This document shows, one piece after another, positions 14,252-63,866 of a DNA stretch of 64,000 nt. Numbering within the stretch: the stretch's first letter is position 1; each line of letters opens with the position of its first letter. The notes beneath the pieces were generated by a model. The model made no database searches and had not been told where the DNA came from. It saw nothing but the letters and a program-made list of their open reading frames with translations. A program made the translations under genes and the position numbers. Source of the DNA: Thalia democratica (taxonomy: Eukaryota); the NCBI GenBank assembly GCA_965202585.1, contig OZ241834.1, positions 25,544,001 to 25,608,000 of the forward strand. Reading direction: 5' to 3'.

Positions 14252-15181
14252 ATGAACATTTCGTTTGAAAACGCGACACTGAAGGTAGACCTGTCCACCG
14301 GCGCTTTCTCACTGAGAGACTTCGCGTTTCAGGCTTGCAACCAGGTAGTCGCAACCTACATCCTACTCACCTCCTTGGTGTACCAGCTCACGACGGAGCG
14401 GCACAAAACAAAGTCGAAGGAGAACAAGATTTTAAACATACTGTGCGTCTTCAACGTGCTGTGCGCTTTCGTCTGCGTCTCCAAGGACCTTCCCGTTTTG
14501 TACATGGACAACAAGCCCGGTCTCTTCTGCGACCTGGTGGTCAGCATTCTGGGCGGCGGCCCCTACTTCCTCGGGTTGCTGACGGCGTTCGGCATGCTGT
14601 GGTACCGGCAGTACAAGCTCTACTCCTCCCCCGTGCTGAAACCTTTCGACGGGTTCAAGCTGGCGAACTGCTTCCTGCTGGGCTGCTTCGTCGTCCTGGT
14701 GCTCGCCTGCACCGTCGTCTTCCTGTACGACTCGGACTGGGCGCAGGTGAACTCGACGTGCGTGCAGGTGTTCACCGGGAGGATCGACAGCAGCGCGGTG
14801 CTCGCCTCCTACTGCGCCGTCACCGTGTTCTGCCAGTGCGTGCTGTTCGCGTTCATCGCGCACCCGGTCGCCTGCCGCGAGCACATCAACCGCAAGGTGG
14901 GCGCCGACCTCAACAGGATGGTCAGGAGGCTGCTCGCGTGCACGGTCGGCTGCTGCCTGAGCTCGCTCCAACTGAACGTGTTCCTCATGCTGGTCACCAC
15001 CGGCCGGCTGTACCTGTACTGGCCCAACTTCGCCGGCTTGGACCTGGTCGTCACCGCGCTGTGCGTCACCGGCACGTTCGCCAACTGGCGGGAGCGGCTG
15101 TTCCCGTTTTGCGGGAGGAGGAGGCCGGAGACGAGGGGGACCGTTGTGGTCAGGAGGGACTTTCGGAGCGGGGTGGCTTGA
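14252..15181 (+). CDS. Intronless orphan 7-transmembrane (GPCR-like) protein, 309 aa
   Basis: 930-bp ORF with very high GC3 in an AT-rich background and seven hydrophobic segments. It has N-terminal sequons (NIS, NAT), a Cys at the top of TM3 (FCDLVV) plus a Cys in ECL2 (TCVQV), LWYRQ at the DRY-equivalent position and FxxWRxRLFPF after TM7. I recall these last motifs from ascidian orphan 7TM families (not verified). Confidence 0.85.
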   Translation: MNISFENATLKVDLSTGAFSLRDFAFQACNQVVATYILLTSLVYQLTTERHKTKSKENKILNILCVFNVLCAFVCVSKDLPVLYMDNKPGLFCDLVVSILGGGPYFLGLLTAFGMLWYRQYKLYSSPVLKPFDGFKLANCFLLGCFVVLVLACTVVFLYDSDWAQVNSTCVQVFTGRIDSSAVLASYCAVTVFCQCVLFAFIAHPVACREHINRKVGADLNRMVRRLLACTVGCCLSSLQLNVFLMLVTTGRLYLYWPNFAGLDLVVTALCVTGTFANWRERLFPFCGRRRPETRGTVVVRRDFRSGVA

Positions 15182-51300: not shown

Positions 51301-52586
51301 ATAATACTAGGTATAAGTAAATACACTTAGATAGTTATACATAAATTATTCCAAAATGAATAATAATCTCATCTTTAACAGCCTCATAGTAAGGTGTATA
51401 AATTGATTAGTTTTTTTATAATATCATTTTAATTACATTAAAAAAAAGTATCAATAATGTTCCAACCTGTTTCGCCTGTTTGACGGCTTCGTAGTAGGGT
51501 CTTAGTAGCATATTAATTATACATCATTATAAACCTAATCCCACCTGTTTCGCCTGTTTGACGGCTTCATAGTAGGGTCTTAGTAGCATATTAATTATAC
51601 ATCATTATAAACCTAATCCCACCTGTTTCGCCTGTTTGACGGCTTCGTAGTAGGGTCTTAGTAGCATATTAATTATACATCATTATAAACCTGATCCCAC
51701 CTGTTTCGCCTGTTTGACGGCTTCGTAGTAGGGTCTTAGTAGCATATTAATTATACATCATTATAAACCTAATCCCACCTGTTTCGCCTGTTTGACGGCT
51801 TCGTAGTAGGGTCTTAGTAGCATATTAATTATACATCATTATAAACCTGATCCCACCTGTTTCGCCTGTTTGACGGCTTCGTAGTAGGGTCTTAGTAGCA
51901 TATTAATTATACATCATTATAAACCTAATCCCACCTGTTTCGCCTGTTTGACGGCTTCATAGTAGGGTCTGGCCTTCGCTATGGACTTCTCTTTGTTCCT
52001 GGTCAGGTCCTGCAGCATCTCCTTCGCATCCTGCCTCAGCTTAGTGAACCTGCACCTCTCAGCTGACAGCTCCGTTTCAAGCCGGTTGATCTCGTCAGTC
52101 GCCTGGTTGAGCGAGTCAAGCTCTGTCTGAATATTTTTAAAATGTTATTGTTTATTAATTTTAAAAAGTATGGTAGATTATCTCTACTAAAAAAAATTTT
52201 GAAAATGTTGAAAAAGTTTCAGCTTGACAATTAAAATTAAATTTTAAAGTCCTTTTAAACTGTTAGTTTATATTGTTAAAATAGAAAACTGAAGTTTAGT
52301 CTAAAAAGACAAAAACAAAAAGCAACATGTGTATTCTTTTTTTTTTTAACTAACTTTCTACTTTTATTTATTAAGTACTGTTAAGTTATGGTTTAAATTA
52401 AAATCAATGGTAAAAAAAGGTTTTGTCCAATTATTAAAATTTAAACAGTTAAATGCCACTTTAGCAAAAGCAAAAATATCTTTTATCATTACTTAAACCA
52501 GTATTTTTAACTTAGTATCAACAAATGATAAAAACAAAAATAAAAATTACTTTTACTCTCGGGTCTACTTCTCCTTCCTCAGACAT
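42332..52586 (-). CDS. SH3BP5: SH3 domain-binding protein 5 family (SH3BP5/SH3BP5L, parcas, REI-1; Rab11 GEF), 8 exons, 401 aa
   Basis: Exons are 52586-52551, 52126-51935, 48363-48170, 44425-44275, 43933-43714, 43279-43193, 42927-42826 and 42555-42332 (1206 nt; phases 0,0,2,0,1,1,1). The protein reads MSEEGEVDPRVK-TELDSLNQATDEINRLE...KARPYYEA...HRAAKETIRLMEQ...AWQE...TRSE...KYKTSLKNLEVISSEIHQRR. It is collinear with human SH3BP5 as I recall it (DPRIQGELEKLNQSTDDIN, RAAKETISLAEQ, AWQEM, ALKNLEMISDEIHERR). SH3BP5 versus SH3BP5L orthology is not resolved. Confidence 0.93.
44189..44233 (-). other. Candidate 45-nt in-frame micro-exon, a duplicate of the SH3BP5 exon 4 3' end
   Basis: tttag|TCA ACT ACC ACA TTC GCT AAC GAG CAA GTT GAG CTC ATT TTG AAA|gtatct (STTTFANEQVELILK), compared with the exon 4 end ERVELILQ. 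It is phase 0-0 and lies 41 nt after the exon 4 donor. Confidence 0.45.
48614..48700 (+). mobile_element. Decayed left end of the CAGGGTTTCCCAAA hAT family
   Basis: cagggtttgacaacataggagatgtcgctcacttagggaagattt aligns with cagggtttcccaaagtgggcgatatcgcccccctgggggcgattt (29615). Confidence 0.6.
51462..51970 (-). repeat. 78-bp tandem array: last 34 nt of SH3BP5 exon 2 plus first 44 nt of intron 2 (7 exon-end copies)
   Basis: Units start at 51462, 51540, 51618, 51696, 51774, 51852 and 51930 and are near-identical. The 51930 copy is the real exon end. Confidence 0.97.
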
Positions 52587-52653: not shown

Positions 52654-54975
52654 GTAACTAGAGAAAACATGTAAAAAAAGCTTAAAAGTAAAAACAGCTT
52701 AGTTTTAAAGCTTAAAAACAAAAACAGTTATTAAAAAATTACTATCTGTCATGTGAAAGATAAAGACGTTTATTGCTTAAGTATAAGACAAAAAAAAAAA
52801 CAATATTTATCTATACATGATAAAATTTAAATAAGATTAAATATGTTCAACGAAAACTTTTTTTATTTATTAAATCTGGATAAAAGTACTTTTTAGTCTA
52901 AGAGTTTCTAATAACCTTCAGTTATATTTAAATATACTGAAGGTGAGTTTGTGATATTTGGACTTGTTAGAAATCATATTAGATAATATATCTTTTTTTT
53001 TAGCTGTTATTTGTAAAAACTACGTTAGTGTAACTTATAAAAATTAAAAGTAACTCTTTCTTTTTAAATCAAACACATAATAAAAAATTTCAAATTGAAA
53101 AGCATCATGTCACCAATATTTATAACAAGTTTACTTTTGTTTTACTTGAAAAGACAGTCTTATAAAAAAATGAAAGCATGACAAGTATGTGTGATGCATT
53201 ATTGTTTATGCTCGTTTGAACAAACAAAACTTGCAACCTTTGTATTTCATGCAGGTGAAACGAAAATGCGAGAGAAAGAAAAGAATATATTGCTTTTTTT
53301 GAAGGCAATCAAAAGTAAAATGCAATTTACGTTTATGATAAAAGTGAATTGCTTCCTATTGAGTGTGCTTCAGTTTGAATATAAACTTATTTGAAAAAAC
53401 TGCGTTTGATTTAAATACTAATAGTCATAACAATCTTTAATAGACTTACTTTTGATTTTGTATATAAACATAGTAATGACAAAAAAAATTAACAGTTATT
53501 TTTGGATTACTTTTTCTCAAGTTTATTTACTGCAATGTCATAAAAACTTTTTACTTGTAATTTTTATACTTAAACTAGATATTAATTTTTGTAAAACTTT
53601 TGATGGTTTGCATTTATCTAAATGTAAGTTGTTTTAAAGTATATGGTTATTGCAACTTTTGTTAATATTTTCGTTGTTACTTTTTTAATAACTCAGTAAA
53701 CGTTTATCTTTATTTTGTTTTTGACGTTTGGTGTTTTTTTAAAACTTAAAAGTTGAATTACGTGTGTATATTCGAGAACAGTAAACAACAAAAATTTTTT
53801 CAGTTTTATAGTAGTTTTAAAGCTTTTATTTATTTTTGATACTAATATTTGTATACACAAAAATTACCATAGTTGACAAGTATAGTTTACATTGTGTTTA
53901 CTGTTTAAACCTTATCTCGCTTTATTGGAGTAAAGAATTAAAATTAGCTCCTAAATTTTTATGTTAAAAGATGTTATAGACTCTTAAAAAAGGCCGCTAA
54001 TTTAAAAACAAAAACTTTTCCTTATTAAAGTAATAGTTATCATTCTAAAAACTTTGTAAAAATTTTAATTATTTACTGTTTTCCAAACTAAATACTTTTA
54101 AATGTAATTGGTGCATTAAAACCAAATATATTTGTTAAAGTTTTGGTTTAACTATCAAACTTTTATTACAATTATATTCATGATTTTTAAACTGGAATAT
54201 CAGAATGTTGAGCATACAACATACACCAATTTGTATTTTAAATAGTTACTTTATAAGATTTAATCTTTATTTAACTACGTCCTACTTACTTCTAAAAAAT
54301 AAAAGTTCAAAAACAAATAATTTTGTGTTCATAAAAAGTAACAATGTCTAGGAAACTTTAATTTTTTAATGCTGAAACGGATTGTAGTAATCTTTTATTT
54401 AGGTTTGATTAATTAAATTAAACAAGGTTCCGCTTATTTAAAATCTTTTTTATTCAATGAATAGTTTTTTTTTTTGTAACAACAAATTTGACTTAAAGCA
54501 CCATGTGTATGTTCAACCAACTTTTCGTTAAAACTATTTTCAAACTTTTTTCATATTTTTTTCTATTGTGACTTATTTTGTTGTATACCGGATATTTGCA
54601 TTTTTTAATGCAACAAGAAAACATAGACAGAGATTAAAAGCTATTTAAAAGTTAAGAACAGAAATTTTTATACAAAAATTTGCTCGCGAGCCGCGCTGTA
54701 TTGAAAAAAGTCTCAACTGGATGGCAGTTTTATAGAGAAAAAGTGATAATAAGTTAAAATGATATCATAGGGCGAAAACTTCATAAAGTTTTAAAATAAA
54801 AGCTTAGTAGTTTAGTTACCAAGTTTTAAATTAACATTTTTACACTAAATTCTTGCACAAAAAGTCGTTTTTCACTGTTTTAGTACATCACTAGTAGCTG
54901 ATGCCTGATTTTGAAAAAGAATAAAAAACTAAAATTATTCATAACTAGAATCATTGAAATCTAGTCGGTGCGAGC

Positions 54976-56635
54976 ATGAAACTATCTGCTGCAGAGGTAG
55001 TATATATTCGGTTAGTGGGTTAAATAAGTACTATGAATTTATGTGTCCTGGAAAAAAATACTCATGCATTACTAATAACATGGGAAAGTAGGAAAGATGC
55101 CTGATTTGTATATTTATTTTTATGCTAAATTTTAAAGGATAAAATCTTACTCTTTGTTGTTCGTAAAGATCATTTTTTTCTTAACATTTTTTTTAACAGA
55201 TCTTTATCAATATTTTGTCGTTATCGGAACAACTTACACAGTGTAGGTGAAAAATATTTTACTCGCATATATTTTTTTTTGGTAGATATAGATATTAATA
55301 AAATAAATCATGTTTTAGTTTTGTACTTTATTCGTCTAAGTCAACCAAAGGTGTTTTATGAGAAAAATTTTCAACTCATTTTTAACTCTAAAACGATACT
55401 GAAAACTATAGTTTACAGTAAAAAATAAACGGCTTGGTATTTATAAAAAAACATTGACACAAAAAATTTATTTATCCATCGGATACCTAAAAGTAAAAAC
55501 TGCATCCGGGTAAGACTGCAATTTTTCAATCACTCCTTTGTTCGACAACCAGTTCGCAGACACATGCACTAGTGATTATTATGATTTGTTTCTCGTGCGT
55601 AAATACATGGTAGCTCCGTGGTTCATCATTTCGAGATTTACGCATGTTTATACTCACTGGGATTGGTGTGCAGGTTTGTGTTTAAGGTATTTATATGAAT
55701 TTTGTAGAAACTGGTTCTTTGTATTTGTAATTAACTATTTGTAATCAATGTTATAATTGCGATTGCTAGAACGAAAAATGATTCCCAAAGTTTGATCATA
55801 ATAAAAAAGTATGTACAGGAATGATTTCAATTCATTTTTTATTTTAAGTAATAGTACCATAAAGATTTAACATTTGAACATTTATAAGTAAAGGTTAAAA
55901 TAATAAGACGATTTTATAACTAGCAAAAGCTTAAGAAAGTATTTCAAAATATTATTAAACATTATGACTTTGAATTTATCTAAAAAAACTAACTAAATCA
56001 CAAGCAAAAATTTAAAACGTCTCTTAAGATAAAAAAAATATTAGACACTGTCAAAAATTAGTTGATTATTTAAAGTTTATAAACATTAATAAAAAAACTG
56101 TAGATTACACATGGAGTCATACAATGTCTGCTTATAAAGGACCAATGACAAAAGAGTATTATTTCAATAAAAACTACGTATCAAATAATTACAACACTGC
56201 AAAAGAAATTTGTAAATCGAAAGGATACGGTTGGGATATTGCTGACTTTAGTTTTATAATGGAAAATGAAAATGTTTCTCAGCAAGAGAACTTAAAACAA
56301 AACAATCAAGTTGTAAAAGTTAGGTAATTTTAAGTTCATTTATTTTGTTGATAAGACATTTATTTTTATAGTATTTGTTAAGCAGTTTTAAATAAGTTAT
56401 AAAGAATATATTCATAGCTTTTAATCTATTTTTAAATTTAAATGTAGAAGTTGTTTAATTTTTTTGTAGGGAAATATTATACCCTTTGGTTTCATATGAA
56501 GAAAACTATTGGGTCCGAAACATAAACAATGATAAAACTTGCATCAAATTAAAACACGAAGTTTTGAGAATTACTTCATGTTCTGAAGAAAAATCATATT
56601 TTGTTTGTCAACGAGATTTGATGTTTATGACTTAA
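54976..56635 (+). CDS. FN2/CTLD paralog 1: FN2 exon inactivated; predicted CTLD-only secreted product (or pseudogene)
   Basis: Tentative exon 1 is 54976-54996 (MKLSAAE), then exon 2 at 55200-55242. Dead exon 3 at 55476-55673 has its acceptor changed AG to AT and a TAA at 55511-55513. Exons 56104-56323 and 56470-56635 are open, with the CTLD cysteines kept. Confidence 0.65.
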
Positions 56636-58788
56636 AATAGATTAACATTTTTTGTATTCGTAAATTTATAGCCATTTAAATCTAACAACTATTATTTTTA
56701 GATTTTAAGTTGTCGATAGTTTATCAAAACTATCATTTTTGTTGCTATATATACAACGTTTTAAAAATATTATAAGATGAAAAAATGTTTAATTTTGTAT
56801 CTAAGTTGTTTATTTTTTAATATTATTTGGTTTACTTGTCATTAAGAAAAAATCATACTTAAATTTTTCTTTTTTAAATTTTGTAATTTGGAAGAATATT
56901 TCATCTTAGATGAAACTTATAAACAAATCAAAAACTTTTATAAAAAAAAAGCTGATAAACTTTTTTTTTTGTGAAACTGTAAACTATTTTTCTATTTAAT
57001 GTTTATATTTCTTATGATCTCTATTGATTAATAAAAACAAAATAACTAATAGTTTTTTAACTGATAACAGAATAAGATTTTTCTATAGACTAGAGTTTTA
57101 TACAATCTATTTCGAAGGCTTTATAATACTAACACTTTTATTTTGTAATAAGTAATTTCTTTACTTAAGTACCTATTTCTTTAAATGTGAAAACAAACTA
57201 AGCCATAACTACTTTAACAAGTACAATTATAAAAAATAAGTATTTACTACACAAAAGAAAGTAATATGCAAATATATGAAAACCTATGTCTATTAAAAAA
57301 AATCAGTTTCAAACTTTTACAAGTCTATGAAAACTTTTCAGTTAAGTAAATTAAAATTTTAAAAGGTGTAGGAAGTTTATATATAATTTGGTTGTTCTCT
57401 CAACGAACATGTAGCATTTATGTTTGTTGTATTATGTTTCAATATTTTAATAATTCACACCATCATTCATAAGTTATAGTATATATTTGTATATATATAT
57501 AAATACTGTAACTACTCATAAAATTTATAAGTTCAAGGACGTTTTAGTTTTATAAATATAATAAATCAAACAATTATCTTTTTTAACCACATTAGGATGT
57601 CAAATATATAAGTTCAAAATATACACTTTTTCAAAGTCACAAACAAACGTATCAGTTTTTAGTTATTCATATATTTTCTTTATTTACATAAATTTTTTGT
57701 TTAGTAAAAGCTTTCAAATAAATTTTGGTCAGAAGATAGTGAAAATTAATTTTTAAAATTCTATATACTTAATTTAGACTAATTTTTAAGTAGATTTTTT
57801 TTATAATGTTACTTTTAAAAATATTTTTTTACTACCTTATATACCTAAATCAGCGTTTTTGAAACACATTCTCTACTGAATAGCATTTAATATTTTATAA
57901 AACTTTTAGCTTGTTAAAACAAAAGTTGTTTATAACTTCCAATTGGAGACTTAAAAAGCTAAAAAAATCTGTAAAAAAAACATAAAAATTTGTAAAGGAA
58001 TTATGGTTTAAAATTTATTTTTGTTCAAACTTTTTAAACTTAGGTTTTATATAAAGTATTGAAATATAAATAGGTATTAAAATATAATGTGTTTTTAGGA
58101 AGCTAAACTTTGAAAATTAAAACTGCTATTTTTGATTAAATCTACCATGGTTTCTTAAGTAAGTTTTAAATTTTATGAGTTTACTACAGCAGGTTTTTAA
58201 AAAATAGTTTGTTTAATGTATCTGAGAATAATAGAAATTATAATTACATTTAAGCCTTATTAGCTTACGCAGGTTGTGACATACTTATTAACTTTAAGCT
58301 CTAGTAAAAAATAGCAAATTGCTTGAAAAAATAAAGTAAATTGGTCTACAAATAGTCAAAACAAGTTAAACAACATTGAAATAGTTAGTTGCGACTTGAA
58401 ATGTTTTTATTTAGCTTTTAAGTTAACGTTTTCATAATAGTTCTAAAAATAAATAATTTTACTAAAAACACAAAACAGTTATGTAATATCTAAATTAAAT
58501 CTTAATGATTGTATAATTCGTTGTTTTCTTTTTATCATAGGTACTTTACAAGTGTTAGAATAAACTATTTGTTAACCTCTAAGTATATAAAAAACATATC
58601 TATACTTAGTATTTATAAATGTTTACATAAAAATTTCATAACAAAAAACAATTTATTAAGTTTGTAAATGCTTTACAGGAATGTTTTTCTATTTATTGCA
58701 TACTACTTTATATAATTTGTTTTACAAGATCAGAATAAATCATAGTTTGTTGAATGTTAAGAAAAAATTTGATTTTGATTTGAAACAG

Positions 58789-59742
58789 ACGAGCATAAAG
58801 TTATTGTTATAGGAAAATTTATTAATTTTTCAAAAAACATAAAACTTTAATGTCAATTATTTTCCTTATCTTAAAAGCTATCTAAAATTTTTTTTTTTAT
58901 TTTAGAGAAGGCACCTTTGCCTTTAATTTAAAAAAAAAAATTATTTAATTTGGGGTTGGAATTATTTCATGGGGTCCCTCCAAAAATAAAGGTTTTTTTT
59001 CGTTTTTTTTCATCAAATGGTATTAGAACCAAAAATAAATATTTTTTTTAATTTTTTTTTTTTGATTTCCCTTAGTTTGCATGTTATGAAAACTCTTAAA
59101 TAGTTATTTTATAAATAATGTTAATATCTTTTACGATTTGGCCCAAAATCAAAATGTAGTATATTACACTATCATTTGCCTTGGCCATTTCCTAGATAAA
59201 AAATTGATAAAAGGAAAAAAAAAGTTAATAAGAATGTGAATATACAACAAATGTAATTAAATTATTTTATTTTAATTTAGTTTGATGTAATTCACATTCT
59301 TATTAACTTTTTTTTTCCTTTTATCAATTTTTTATCTAGGAAATGGCCAAGGCAAATGATAGTGTAATATACTACATTTTGATTTTGGGCCAAATCGTAA
59401 AAGATATCAACATTATTTATAAAATAACTATTTAAGAGTTTTTATAACATGCAAACTAAGGGAAATCAAAAAAAAAAATTAAAAAAAAATATTTATTTTT
59501 GGTTCTAATACCATTTGATGAAAAAAAACGAAAAAAAAACTTTATTTTTGGAGGGACCCCATGAAATAATTCCAACCCCAAATTAAATAATTTTTTTTTT
59601 TAATTAAAGGCAAAGGTGCCTTCTCTAAAATAAAATAAAAAAATTTTAGATAGCTTTTAAGATAAGGAAAATAATTGACACTAAAGTTTTATGTTTTTTG
59701 AAAAATTAATAAATTTTCCTATAACAATAACTTTATGCTCGT
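58789..59742. mobile_element. 954-bp foldback (near-perfect palindrome), MULE-like
   Basis: Arms of about 453 bp (58789-59241 and 59290-59742) begin ACGAGCATAAAG and differ at only a handful of sites. Perfect 9-bp TSD ttgaaacag (58780-58788, 59743-59751). Confidence 0.93.
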
Positions 59743-60099
59743 TTGAAACAGCTGTGTGTAAATTTCGGAAAAGTTTTATTTACGTAGAAGTTACCTTTTT
59801 TTTTTTAAGTTTTGTTTAATGTTGTAGATAAAATGTTGTTGTTTACTTTAGTCTTTACTATTCATTACAATTTTTATACTAAGTACTCACAGAAATAAAT
59901 AATAGCATAAAATGTTTAAAACAACACTTATGTCTATAAAGTTTTGAAGCTAGTTACATAATTATTAAAAAATAATAATAAAGTTGTTTCAAACTTTATG
60001 TAAAGAAGTCAAAATGCAAAACAAACTTGCATTAATTTTTTTAATGTAAGTTTTATATAAATAACAAAAAATAAAATTTCCTTTGTTTTGAACATAAGG

Positions 60100-60170: not shown

Positions 60171-61646
60171 TCTGATAATCGAGTTGCTATGTTCAAACCT
60201 TATGTTACTTAAAGCGGCAGGCAAAATGTCAGACTTAGGCTCTGTATAATTTCGCCGATGTTTTCGTTGATCTTTTTTAAACAAAGTTAATATATAAACT
60301 GATTTGTTTAATATATATTAAAACAACTTAAAACTCATTAATAAAATAAAACAGATTATTTATTAAGATGTATTACATGTTGTTAATCTGTATACATTTT
60401 TTTAACTGGTTGTGGTCGATATTTTTTCCTTTTCATACAAATATACCCTAATAAACTTTCGTTTTCATTAATATCATTTTGTATATGCTTTTTATTTTCA
60501 TGTTTTATTAATCATGGAATATGTAATTATCAATTGGACTGTTCTTTATTTATGTTTATATAAACTTTGTATGACCTTTTAAATATTTTTGCTCCTTTGT
60601 TTTAATCATGAGATATGCAAGTTTAAATTGCGTTGTTGGTTATTTTCGTGAAATAAGTAAACTGGAATATTTTTGTTTCACATATTGGATTTTTTATACC
60701 ATCTAAAAATCAAAAAAATCATGGTTCCATCAATTCTTTTTTTTTTTTGATACAGTACAACTTATTTTAAACTATATATTTTTTTTACTACTTTTAGGTT
60801 TTTTTTTGAAGTAAAAGACAATTCTATTTTGAACATAGCGTTTTACGGGTAAATAGTGCGTACCCGCCGGCTACTAAGCTGCAACTGTTCAAATAAAAAT
60901 ATATAATTTCATAAAGTTAAACAAGTTGTGCAAAAAACAATAAGTTTAAGTACAACTAAAATATAATAAAACTAGGAAATTTTTGTTTATGTATTTCTTG
61001 TACTGTTTGGAAGTTTTGTAGGAAAAACAAAATTTCCTAGGCCAACAATTCGTTATTTTATACAAATCACGACTAACATAAGTGTATTTAAAACTAAAAC
61101 ATATTAATATTATATTTAAATCTAGTTATCAACTTGAGTTTAAAAGTTTAACAGAAGTAAGGAAGTTGTTTATTGTTTTAAAATGATCTTTATTCGGTTA
61201 AAAATTAGTGTTACAGCAAACTCTGAAATTACAAATAAAGTATTAAAAGTTTAACATTAGTTTAAAACAAATAAGTTACATAATAAAATTAAAAGGATAA
61301 TAAGTATAAAATTATAGTTCACATATTTACGTGTAACAATTGTTTCCTTTTTTGTTGTTATTTATGTGCACAAAAACCTTTTTGTTTGTGTTATAGATAT
61401 ATTATCACTATAATATGTTACAATACTGTAAGAAGTCATGTTACTATAATTACATAATGACTTAAACTGTATTCAAATAGAATTTGTTTACTTTCTAATA
61501 AAAATTTTTGCCTAATGTTTTATGAACTTATTTATACAGAAATTTAATGTTTTTTCTATAGTGATCAAAACAAGCAATACTTTATACAATTGCTTACAAA
61601 AAACTTACTTAAAACTTTTTTAAACACCAAAAAAAAAAGAATCGAA

Positions 61647-63235
61647 ATGCAAGAAAGAAATCGTTTGTTCAATGTTGTTGTTAGTTTTTGTTGGAATATC
61701 AAAAATTAAAGCATAGATTTGATTTAATGGTCTATTTTACTTAACGAGTGAATTTTGTTTATGTATCATTATTTTTATGTTTACAAGTTATAATAGATGT
61801 ATTAAACTTGTAACAGGTCTTGTTCAGTTTTCTGTCGTTTTCAGAGCAGCTTCCACAATGTAAGTGAATAATACTATTTAATAATATTTAAGAATGTTTT
61901 TGAATAGAGATATCTTGATATTTTAAAAAGGGAACAAGTTTTTTTTTGTGCAACTCAATCAAATATGTTTTATGAGAAAAGTTTTGAAGCCAGTTAAAAA
62001 TCTACAGTTAAACGTACTAAACAAAAACTTAACGATAATACTAATAATAAACAACAATTGTTTTTGTATGCTTAATATTTTCACACAAAAACTTTCAACT
62101 AGCCATCGGATACCTGAAAGTGAGGACAGCATCCGGGTATGACTGCAACTTTTCAATGAGCTCCATCTTCTACAACCAGCACGCTGACACGTGCACCACG
62201 GACTACTACAATCTGTTCCTGGTGGGAAAGTCCACGGAAGATCCGTGGTGCGCCACTAAGAGAACCATGGGCGTGTACACTCACTGGGACTGGTGTGAAG
62301 GTCGGTGTCGAAAATATTTTAAATTATTAGTTTCATCCAAACTAGTAAAATTAATTGTGTGCTTTTTAATTTTCAAATGCTAGAATGATAAATAGTTCTT
62401 AATGTTTAATCGTAACAAGATATACTAAAAATATTTAAATATTTTGATTTTTTTTTTCTAACTAACAATACTATAAAAAAAAATTAATTTAAACAACAAT
62501 AAAAGATCTTAAAATGATTAGATCTTTTTTAATAAGTAGTATTTAATAGTAGAGTTCGAAATGCTATTAAAAATTATGATTTTGAAAAGATTCAATTAGA
62601 ATTACTTAAAGCATATACAAAAATTTTAGACGTCTTTAAAAATAAAAGTTAGAAACTCACTAAGTTAATTAATTATTTAAAGTTAAATAATAAAGAAATA
62701 ATACTGTAGATTACACGTGGAGTCATACAATGTCTGCTTATAAAGGACCAATGACAAAAGAGTATCATTTTAATAAAAACTACATATTAAATAATTACAA
62801 CACGGCAAAAGAAGTTTGTAAATCGAGAGGATACGGTTGGGATATTGCTGACTTTGGGTTTATTATCGAAAATGAAAATGTTTCTAATCAAAAACTTTTG
62901 AAAAATAAAAAACAAATAGAAAAAATAAGGTAATTTTAAGTTTTTAAATTTTATTAATTAGACAATTTATTTTCATATTATTTGTTAAGTAATTTTTAAA
63001 CAGTCATTAAGAATATATACACAGTTTGTAATTTATTTATAAAAATAAAATTGAATGTTAATTTTTCTGTAGGGAAATATTATACCCTTTGATATCATAC
63101 GAAGATAAATTTTGGGTTCGAAACATAAACAATGAAGAAATGTGCATCAAGTTTAAACACGGATCTTTGAAAATTGGTTCATGCTTCGAACGAACATTTT
63201 TTGTTTGTCAACGAGACTTGATGTTTATGAGTTAA
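61647..63235 (+). CDS. Secreted protein: signal peptide + fibronectin type II-like domain + C-type lectin-like domain, 5 exons, 218 aa
   Basis: Exons are 61647-61679, 61817-61859, 62103-62300, 62710-62929 and 63073-63235 (657 nt; phases 0,1,1,2). It has a hydrophobic N-terminus (LFNVVVLFSFLSFS), an FN2-like segment TASGYDCNF...DTCTTD...PWCAT...WDWC, and a CTLD-like segment AKEVC...FWV...C...C...FVCQR without EPN/QPD/WND. Confidence 0.85.
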
Positions 63236-63481: not shown

Positions 63482-63866
63482 CAGGGTTTCCCAAACTGGG
63501 CCAATACAGAAATTTAGAGAGCAGTATGGGGCCAAAGGGGGGCATGAGGTCATAAATTGAAACTTACACTAGATGTTCTGGAGTTGATGATGAAGAGCAA
63601 AAAAAAGTCTTAGGCAATTTTAGTAGTAGTTTTAAAACTTGTACTAGGTATTATGGAAAAAGTTAGGGGGCCACAAGACGGGGGAGTAGTCACACGGCCA
63701 TAGTTTTAAACTTTCACTAAATATTCTGGAGTTGATGATGAAGAGCAAAAATAATAAGGTCTTCGGCAGTTTTAGTGGCATGTTTTGCGAAATCCTGTTG
63801 AAGGGGGCTATAGCTTTTTTAATTTCTCTAAAGGGGGCCTTTTGAAAAAAATTTTGGGAAACCCTG
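63482..63866. mobile_element. hAT MITE, 385 bp, CAGGGTTTCCCAAA family
   Basis: TIRs CAGGGTTTCCCAAA / TTTGGGAAACCCTG, with TSD cctgagat / ccttatat (6/8). Internal direct repeat ttctggagttgatgatgaagagcaaaaa. Confidence 0.88.

Follow-up and report, generated by a model that had tools for sequence, protein, structure and literature searches.

A tandem duplicate in a cluster of small secreted FN2-like and CTLD-like proteins, probably decaying stepwise from its FN2-like exon

In a 64,000-nt stretch of an animal genome of 802 Mb and roughly 24% GC (hereafter, the window), two five-exon genes for small secreted proteins lie in tandem. The upstream gene, copy 1, carries several lesions in its third exon, the one that encodes an FN2-like module, its other coding exons bear the marks of past constraint, and additional disabling alleles of it occur in other individuals. 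We consider it fairly probable that copy 1 is a duplicate in stepwise decay, in which the FN2-like exon was lost first and the remainder is now going the same way. Two other readings have to be weighed. The first, which is close to what a sequence-only reading of the locus had proposed and which we regard as rather unlikely, is that copy 1 is alive and, by leaving its dead, frame-neutral exon 3 out of the transcript, secretes a protein that consists of the CTLD alone, alongside the paralogs with both domains; the broken alleles would then be nulls of a dispensable gene or belong to another species. The second, which we regard as distinctly unlikely, is that the whole of copy 1 was lost recently in one step, for example by loss of exon 1 or of the promoter, in which case the lesions have no order.

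The tandem pair and copy 1 in the reference haplotype

The two genes were defined from direct repeats 6.6 kb apart, together with pairwise alignment, in the window. Their exons are listed below.

54976..54996, + strand: putative exon 1 of copy 1, 21 nt, ATG plus six codons, donor GTAGTA; unsupported
55200..55242, + strand: exon 2 of copy 1, 43 nt, end of the signal peptide, phase 1 at its 3' end; aligns with 61817-61859 of copy 2
55476..55673, + strand: dead exon 3 of copy 1, FN2-like four-cysteine module; AG to AT at 55474-55475, TAA at 55511-55513, Cys to Phe at 55622-55624
56104..56323, + strand: exon 4 of copy 1, coding for the N-terminal half of the CTLD-like domain; frame open in the reference
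56470..56635, + strand: exon 5 of copy 1, C-terminal half of the CTLD-like domain with the stop codon; open in the reference
61647..61679, + strand: exon 1 of copy 2, 33 nt, encoding MQERNRLFNVV; 97% identical in copy 3, length and phase shared with paralogs A and B
61817..61859, + strand: exon 2 of copy 2, aligned to exon 2 of copy 1
62103..62300, + strand: exon 3 of copy 2, intact FN2-like module; GC 53%, GC3 48/65
62710..62929, + strand: exon 4 of copy 2
63073..63235, + strand: exon 5 of copy 2 with the stop codon

Copy 2 encodes an open protein of 218 aa, which begins with the signal peptide MQERNRLFNVVVLFSFLSFS. Its four-cysteine module corresponds to exon 3 alone, and a four-cysteine domain of 126 aa is encoded by exons 4 and 5 together.

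The description of exon 3 given by the sequence-only reading is accurate in its details. The exon measures 198 nt in both copies, without any indel, and lies between phase-1 introns, so that skipping it preserves the reading frame. Its acceptor has been lost in copy 1 (caactAG/CC in copy 2 and atttAT/CC in copy 1, at 55474-55475, the slash marking the exon border), a TAT codon of copy 2 has become the premature stop TAA at 55511-55513, and the motif PWCAT has become PWFII, where TTC at 55622-55624 replaces the codon for the third structural cysteine. An assembly error as the source of these lesions was considered and ruled out, because an independent contig matches the reference throughout the exon: in the second record of run X1 (55213-55936), all nine differences from the reference fall in intron 3. 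Exons 2, 4, and 5 of copy 1 were said to be intact, and in the reference haplotype they are: their frames are open, their AG/GT borders are kept, and all four cysteines of exons 4 and 5 are present. Joined as exons 1-2-4-5, with the putative exon 1 included, copy 1 gives an open frame of 149 aa.

The beginning of this frame is another matter. Exon 1 is 33 nt long in each of the four types of intact paralog (copies 2 and 3 and the older paralogs A and B) and is followed by GTAAGT or GTTAGT. This ancestral exon is unrecognizable in copy 1, where the homologous position in the paralog comparison contains stops and no ATG, and copies 1 and 2 become clearly homologous only from 10-30 nt upstream of exon 2 onward. 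The 21-nt exon 1 at 54976-54996, proposed for copy 1 in the sequence-only reading, has no alignable counterpart in the other family members and appears, from its sequence, to be simply an in-phase ATG followed by GT. With exon 2 it would yield a weak signal peptide, MKLSAAE plus IFINILSLS. A non-homologous start exon with a weak signal peptide speaks against a live copy 1 that secretes a CTLD-only protein; on the other side, an in-phase ATG exon of 21 nt does exist upstream of exon 2, which weighs against stepwise decay.

Gene family, domains and genomic setting

Six-frame searches of the whole genome found the exon 3 module at seven places only, all of them on one chromosome. These seven loci are copies 1, 2, and 3 and the older paralogs A and B, each of the latter with a mirror copy. 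Copy 3 is intact, lies about 341 kb away on the opposite strand, and shares 93.5% identity with copy 2 across 2.4 kb. The FN2-like module coincides with a single exon between phase-1 introns in each of the seven genes, and for this reason its loss is frame-neutral. FN2, kringle, and EGF domains are class 1-1 mobile modules, known from exon shuffling, and the FN2-like exon resembles them in being flanked by phase-1 introns. Unlike the cases of exon shuffling, however, copy 1 concerns the loss of a module from one paralog, and use of the resulting product is only putative.

A large inverted segmental duplication was observed on this chromosome, in which a region at about 25.606-25.628 Mb is mirrored at about 25.915-25.949 Mb. 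It carries copies 2 and 3 as one pair, as well as paralogs A and B, each accompanied by its mirror copy. One of its boundaries is at position 61613 of the window, 34 nt upstream of the start codon of copy 2. Copy 1 has no counterpart in the inverted duplicate, because the duplicated block starts just upstream of copy 2.

The two domains were called FN2 and CTLD in the sequence-only reading. As far as cysteine patterns and motifs are concerned, these labels fit, but profile support is weak. The Pfam fn2 profile (PF00040, kringle-like clan) scores 8.8 bits on exon 3 (E = 2.1), below the gathering cut-off of 22.2, with residues 25-64 aligned to positions 10-42 of the 42-position profile. In the exon 3 of the six intact paralogs, C14, C30, C49, C64, the run P47-W48-C49-A50-T51, W61, and W63 are invariant, so that the exon has the four cysteines of an FN2 domain and its aromatic core (WC...W.C) around the third and fourth cysteines. 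The best PDB matches of a profile made from the six intact sequences are all FN2 domains (DEC-205, E = 0.019-0.18; the FnII domain of factor XII, E = 0.065). Language-model neighbours of exon 3 fall in fn2 and Kringle clusters (0.84), which we take as a lead only, and an AlphaFold2 model of the exon (pLDDT 47.8) was too poor for a fold search.

For the second domain, the Pfam Lectin_C profile (PF00059) gave no match on exon 4 or exon 5, each translated separately. The exon 4 profile aligns with the N-terminal 46 columns of a repeat from a Lectin_C-positive protein (P0003, 47.8 bits) with an hhalign probability of 96% (E = 3.5e-9), and the same comparison with the exon 5 profile gave no significant match. 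The pattern CKS...FWVRN...C..K...SC....FVCQ is found in copies 1-3, A, and B, and with it the four cysteines, the WIGL-like strand, and the FVC of a CTLD. In a CTLD, the long loop bears the Ca2+/carbohydrate motifs (EPN/QPD, WND); here the WV strand is followed by just some 30 residues, and EPN, QPD, and WND are all absent. If the domain is a CTLD, these features would fit a compact one that lacks the long sugar-binding loop, and sugar binding is not implied. The products of exon 3 and of exons 4-5 are accordingly named FN2-like and CTLD-like here.

The mannose receptor family is built from a cysteine-rich ricin-type domain, an FN2 domain, 8-10 CTLDs, and a transmembrane tail, and its vertebrate members with an FN2-CTLD part are DEC-205/LY75, MRC1, PLA2R1, and Endo180. 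The proteins described here resemble a part of these receptors, and the invertebrate C-type lectins with an FN2 domain, in having a signal peptide, one FN2-like module, and then a CTLD-like domain. Unlike the mannose receptor family, the 218-aa protein has neither a ricin-type cysteine-rich domain nor a transmembrane segment and only a single CTLD-like domain, and by domain layout it falls outside that family. Among the invertebrate systems, LvMR of shrimp has a signal peptide, one FN II domain, and two CRDs (PMC10341498). The present proteins differ from such systems in that the Pfam fn2 and Lectin_C thresholds are not reached and in that the CTLD-like part is only about 126 aa long.

Sequences like exon 4 (YTW...K.Y.FNY...C.S.G.GWDVASFQ) are found at at least 35 loci genome-wide. 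These exons occur on many chromosomes, begin with YTWE or YYWD, and all end at the same exon border; some of them are GC-rich. They represent a widespread exon for the N-terminal half of a CTLD-like domain in this genome. Outside the genome, relatives are few. When protein representatives were searched with exon 4, the matches consisted only of one protein with several CTLDs and two fragments of short ORFs, one of them from a Tara Oceans contig, and no transcript-derived protein of the family was found among 1.84 billion representatives. A homologous-protein search with exon 3 and a search for encoding contigs with the exon 4 ORFs of copies 1 and 2 each returned nothing, and an atlas search using exon 4 gave no usable match. 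This 532-nt contig from the Tara Oceans marine metagenome (ENA ERZ907791, PRJEB4352) contains an exon 4 ORF, P0001, that is 77% identical to copy 2. Because the ORF retains the ancestral residues of both copies, a related planktonic species has the family as well. The seven genes form an unannotated, lineage-restricted cluster of small secreted proteins with an FN2-like and a compact CTLD-like domain.

Past constraint and present decay of copy 1

Copies 1 and 2 are 69.3% identical in their non-coding DNA, of which 1010 aligned nt contain 22 indel events. Against this background, exon 3 is 73.2% identical (53 of 198 positions differ), exon 4 86.8%, and exon 5 83.4%, with one in-frame insertion of 3 nt in copy 1; taken together, exons 4-5 are 85% identical and contain no frameshift. 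Under neutrality throughout the time since the duplication, exons 4-5 would be predicted to have about 75 substitutions and four indels; the probability of an open frame would be about 0.003, and that of at most one indel 0.08. Since the frame is open and indels are few compared with this neutral expectation, exons 4-5 were constrained for most of the time since the duplication. When changes were polarized with paralogs A and B as outgroups, the copy 1 lineage showed 10 non-synonymous and six synonymous changes in exons 4-5, a ratio that differs from the neutral one (P = 0.049) and resembles the 12:8 of the stem of copies 2 and 3. Neutral evolution of exons 4-5 would have told against the sequence-only reading, and over the long term they have not evolved neutrally; the neutrality expected of the remaining exons of a pseudogene is likewise not seen over that term, since divergence is about half the neutral value. 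Copy 1 exons 4-5 were thus clearly under purifying selection for most of the post-duplication time; the open frame and the high identity would also suit a live gene with a CTLD-only product.

In exon 3, the copy 1 lineage has 15 non-synonymous and five synonymous changes, which is compatible with neutrality (P = 0.38), and the stem of copies 2 and 3 has eight and 11. The difference between the two lineages is not significant (Fisher P = 0.054), but it does point away from an unordered loss of the whole copy. At codon positions 1 and 2, the changes on the copy 1 lineage and on the stem number 15 and 6 in exon 3, and 9 and 9 in exons 4 and 5. An acceleration confined to exon 3 on the copy 1 lineage is what would be expected if a protein without exon 3 had been used for some time, and it points toward a CTLD-only product; however, on the copy 1 lineage exon 3 does not differ significantly from exons 4-5 (Fisher P = 0.48 for non-synonymous against synonymous changes and 0.20 for positions 1 and 2). 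These counts suggest that the relaxation of exon 3 probably began earlier than that of exons 4-5.

The sequence-only reading had predicted a pairwise dN/dS of about 1 for exon 3 and below 1 for exons 4 and 5. Between copies 1 and 2, the Nei-Gojobori values are 0.18 for exon 3 (dS 1.22, dN 0.21), 0.38 for exon 4, 0.51 for exon 5, and 0.43 for exons 4 and 5 together, so that the predicted order does not appear; the corresponding joint value for copies 2 and 3 is 0.33. The exon 3 value is low because of a huge synonymous divergence, tied to the difference in GC3. In this 24% GC genome, exon 3 of copies 2 and 3 (62103-62300, and L031:8444-8641 on the minus strand) has 53% GC and 74% GC3, an excess that ends at the exon borders, the other exons of these copies having 25-33% GC3. 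Copies 2 and 3 differ in this exon by two non-synonymous changes and no synonymous change. The excess may be due to biased gene conversion confined to the exon or to selection acting on synonymous sites.

The hand counts of GC3 in the sequence-only reading, 48/65 for copy 2 and 29/65 for copy 1, are exact. What does not follow from them is a drop in copy 1: paralogs A and B, saturated and AT-rich at third positions, bias parsimony and do not allow the change to be polarized. Both statements, that GC3 fell in copy 1 and that it rose in copies 2 and 3, were therefore dropped as established results, and the difference may in part be a gain of GC3 in copies 2 and 3.

Properties of exon 3 also speak for an unordered death of copy 1. 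On that reading, exon 3 merely looks more decayed, because all copies of this exon evolve rapidly and its third positions, being GC-rich, mutate quickly in an AT-rich genome. On the stem of copies 2 and 3, exon 3 is likewise about twice as fast (20 changes in 198 nt, against 20 in the 383 nt of exons 4-5), and 30 of the 53 differences in exon 3 are G/C in copy 2 and A/T in copy 1. Furthermore, 20 of the 23 family-invariant residues survive in copy 1, with no indel, and a handful of substitutions suffices for the three lesions. Against it stand, besides the lineage comparison above, the distribution of damage within a single haplotype, with three independent disabling changes in 198 nt of exon 3 and none in 381 nt of exons 4-5, where roughly 8-9% of random substitutions would create a stop.

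The restriction of the reference lesions to an exon whose skipping preserves the frame speaks for a live gene with a CTLD-only product, and alleles from other individuals bear on this directly. They were read over 54800-56800 from Logan contigs of two samples, in three DNA-like runs. Lesions in exon 3 alone, as the sequence-only reading had it, hold for the reference haplotype; in other haplotypes, the acceptor of exon 2 and exons 4 and 5 are broken as well, as follows: (i) a G>T change at 55199 removes the acceptor of exon 2, and is heterozygous in sample S1 and the only form in run X3, from organism B; (ii) in runs X1, X2, and X3, exon 5 has seven changes within 36 nt, four of the derived ones non-synonymous, among them TGG>GGT at 56510-56512 (Trp175Gly) together with E171Q and D182K, and Trp175 is invariant across the five aligned exon 5 sequences (copies 1-3, A, and B); and (iii) in X3, one base is inserted after 56220 and another after 56221 in exon 4, a +2 frameshift that leads to ...TCG AGA TAG. 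The X3 contig is 1660 nt long, covers 54899-56567, and is about 5% divergent; its nine listed indels sum exactly to its length. Organism B may be another species. Among the listed variants, nine per 318 nt fall in exons 4-5 and 23 per 1109 nt in non-coding DNA, with no deficit in the exons.

Alleles with a lost acceptor, Trp175Gly, or a frameshift are unlike those of a selected gene. A search of sequencing runs found the locus in three of them (X1-X3), all with DNA-like, intron-containing contigs, and in no RNA run. The junction 55242>56104, which would mark the skipping of exon 3, is absent from these three DNA runs, and the joints reported there are low-complexity artefacts. The claim of a functional CTLD-only protein at present is thus not supported, in view of the broken alleles of exons 2, 4, and 5, the missing ancestral exon 1, and the even spread of the listed variants. 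Moreover, about 10 neutral substitutions leave the frame of exons 4-5 open 41% of the time, so that finding this frame intact in a single haplotype does not speak for selection at present. That exons 4-5 of the reference are open is best explained by damage not having reached them yet, rather than by maintenance, and we infer that the reference allele of copy 1 makes no useful protein now.

We therefore return to stepwise decay as the preferred reading, in which copy 1 would be a decaying member of a tandem pair within the seven-gene cluster of secreted proteins. After the duplication, copy 1 would have passed through a long stretch of purifying selection; the symmetrical FN2-like exon would then have been the first part disabled in the reference haplotype, and the remaining parts would now be going, with exon 1 lost and broken alleles of exons 2, 4, and 5 in other individuals. 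Against this reading stand the intact exons 2, 4, and 5 of the reference haplotype, the acceleration confined to exon 3, and the fact that the disabling alleles were seen in Logan contigs from just two samples, with organism B possibly a separate species.

With its disabling lesions of coding sequence and splice site, copy 1 has the marks by which pseudogenes are recognized. It resembles the duplicated (non-processed) pseudogenes of tandem clusters in its loss of a splice site, its premature stop, and its lost structural cysteine, as well as in the disabling alleles of other individuals and in having intact, constrained neighbours, copies 2 and 3. It is unlike the usual duplicated pseudogene in that the reference lesions all lie in one symmetrical exon and the other exons show past constraint; for a time, it may have been used as a shorter protein. 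As the evidence stands, it is most likely an ordinary decaying duplicate, a phenomenon of a known kind, and the value of the observation lies mainly in annotation: copy 1 is to be flagged as a probable pseudogene, and a seven-gene cluster so far unannotated is documented. If a CTLD-only product were real, copy 1 would be a natural example of a symmetrical module exon shed from a multidomain protein after duplication. It is improbable that the reference copy 1 is expressed through obligatory skipping of exon 3 as a secreted protein with the compact CTLD alone while null alleles segregate; were this so, domain loss by exon death would have been caught in the act, followed by a presence/absence polymorphism of function.

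Other features of the window

Several features of the window were noted besides the two genes. In the spacer between copies 1 and 2, a stretch of 963 nt at 58786-59745 is 96.6% identical to its own reverse complement, and is a long palindrome or a foldback element. An intronless ORF of 309 aa at 14252-15181, with several hydrophobic segments, is GC-rich (about 41% over 2 kb) in DNA otherwise of 24% GC, and its product is possibly a membrane receptor. At 51380-52081, a tandem array consists of seven to eight copies of a 78-nt unit with 97-98% identity. Downstream of copy 2, within 63534-63786, there are two G-rich repeat units of roughly 90 nt each (63548-63633 and 63696-63786). Such G-rich units are also present downstream of copy 3 (L031:6956-7187), and those at both copies may belong to a short interspersed element.
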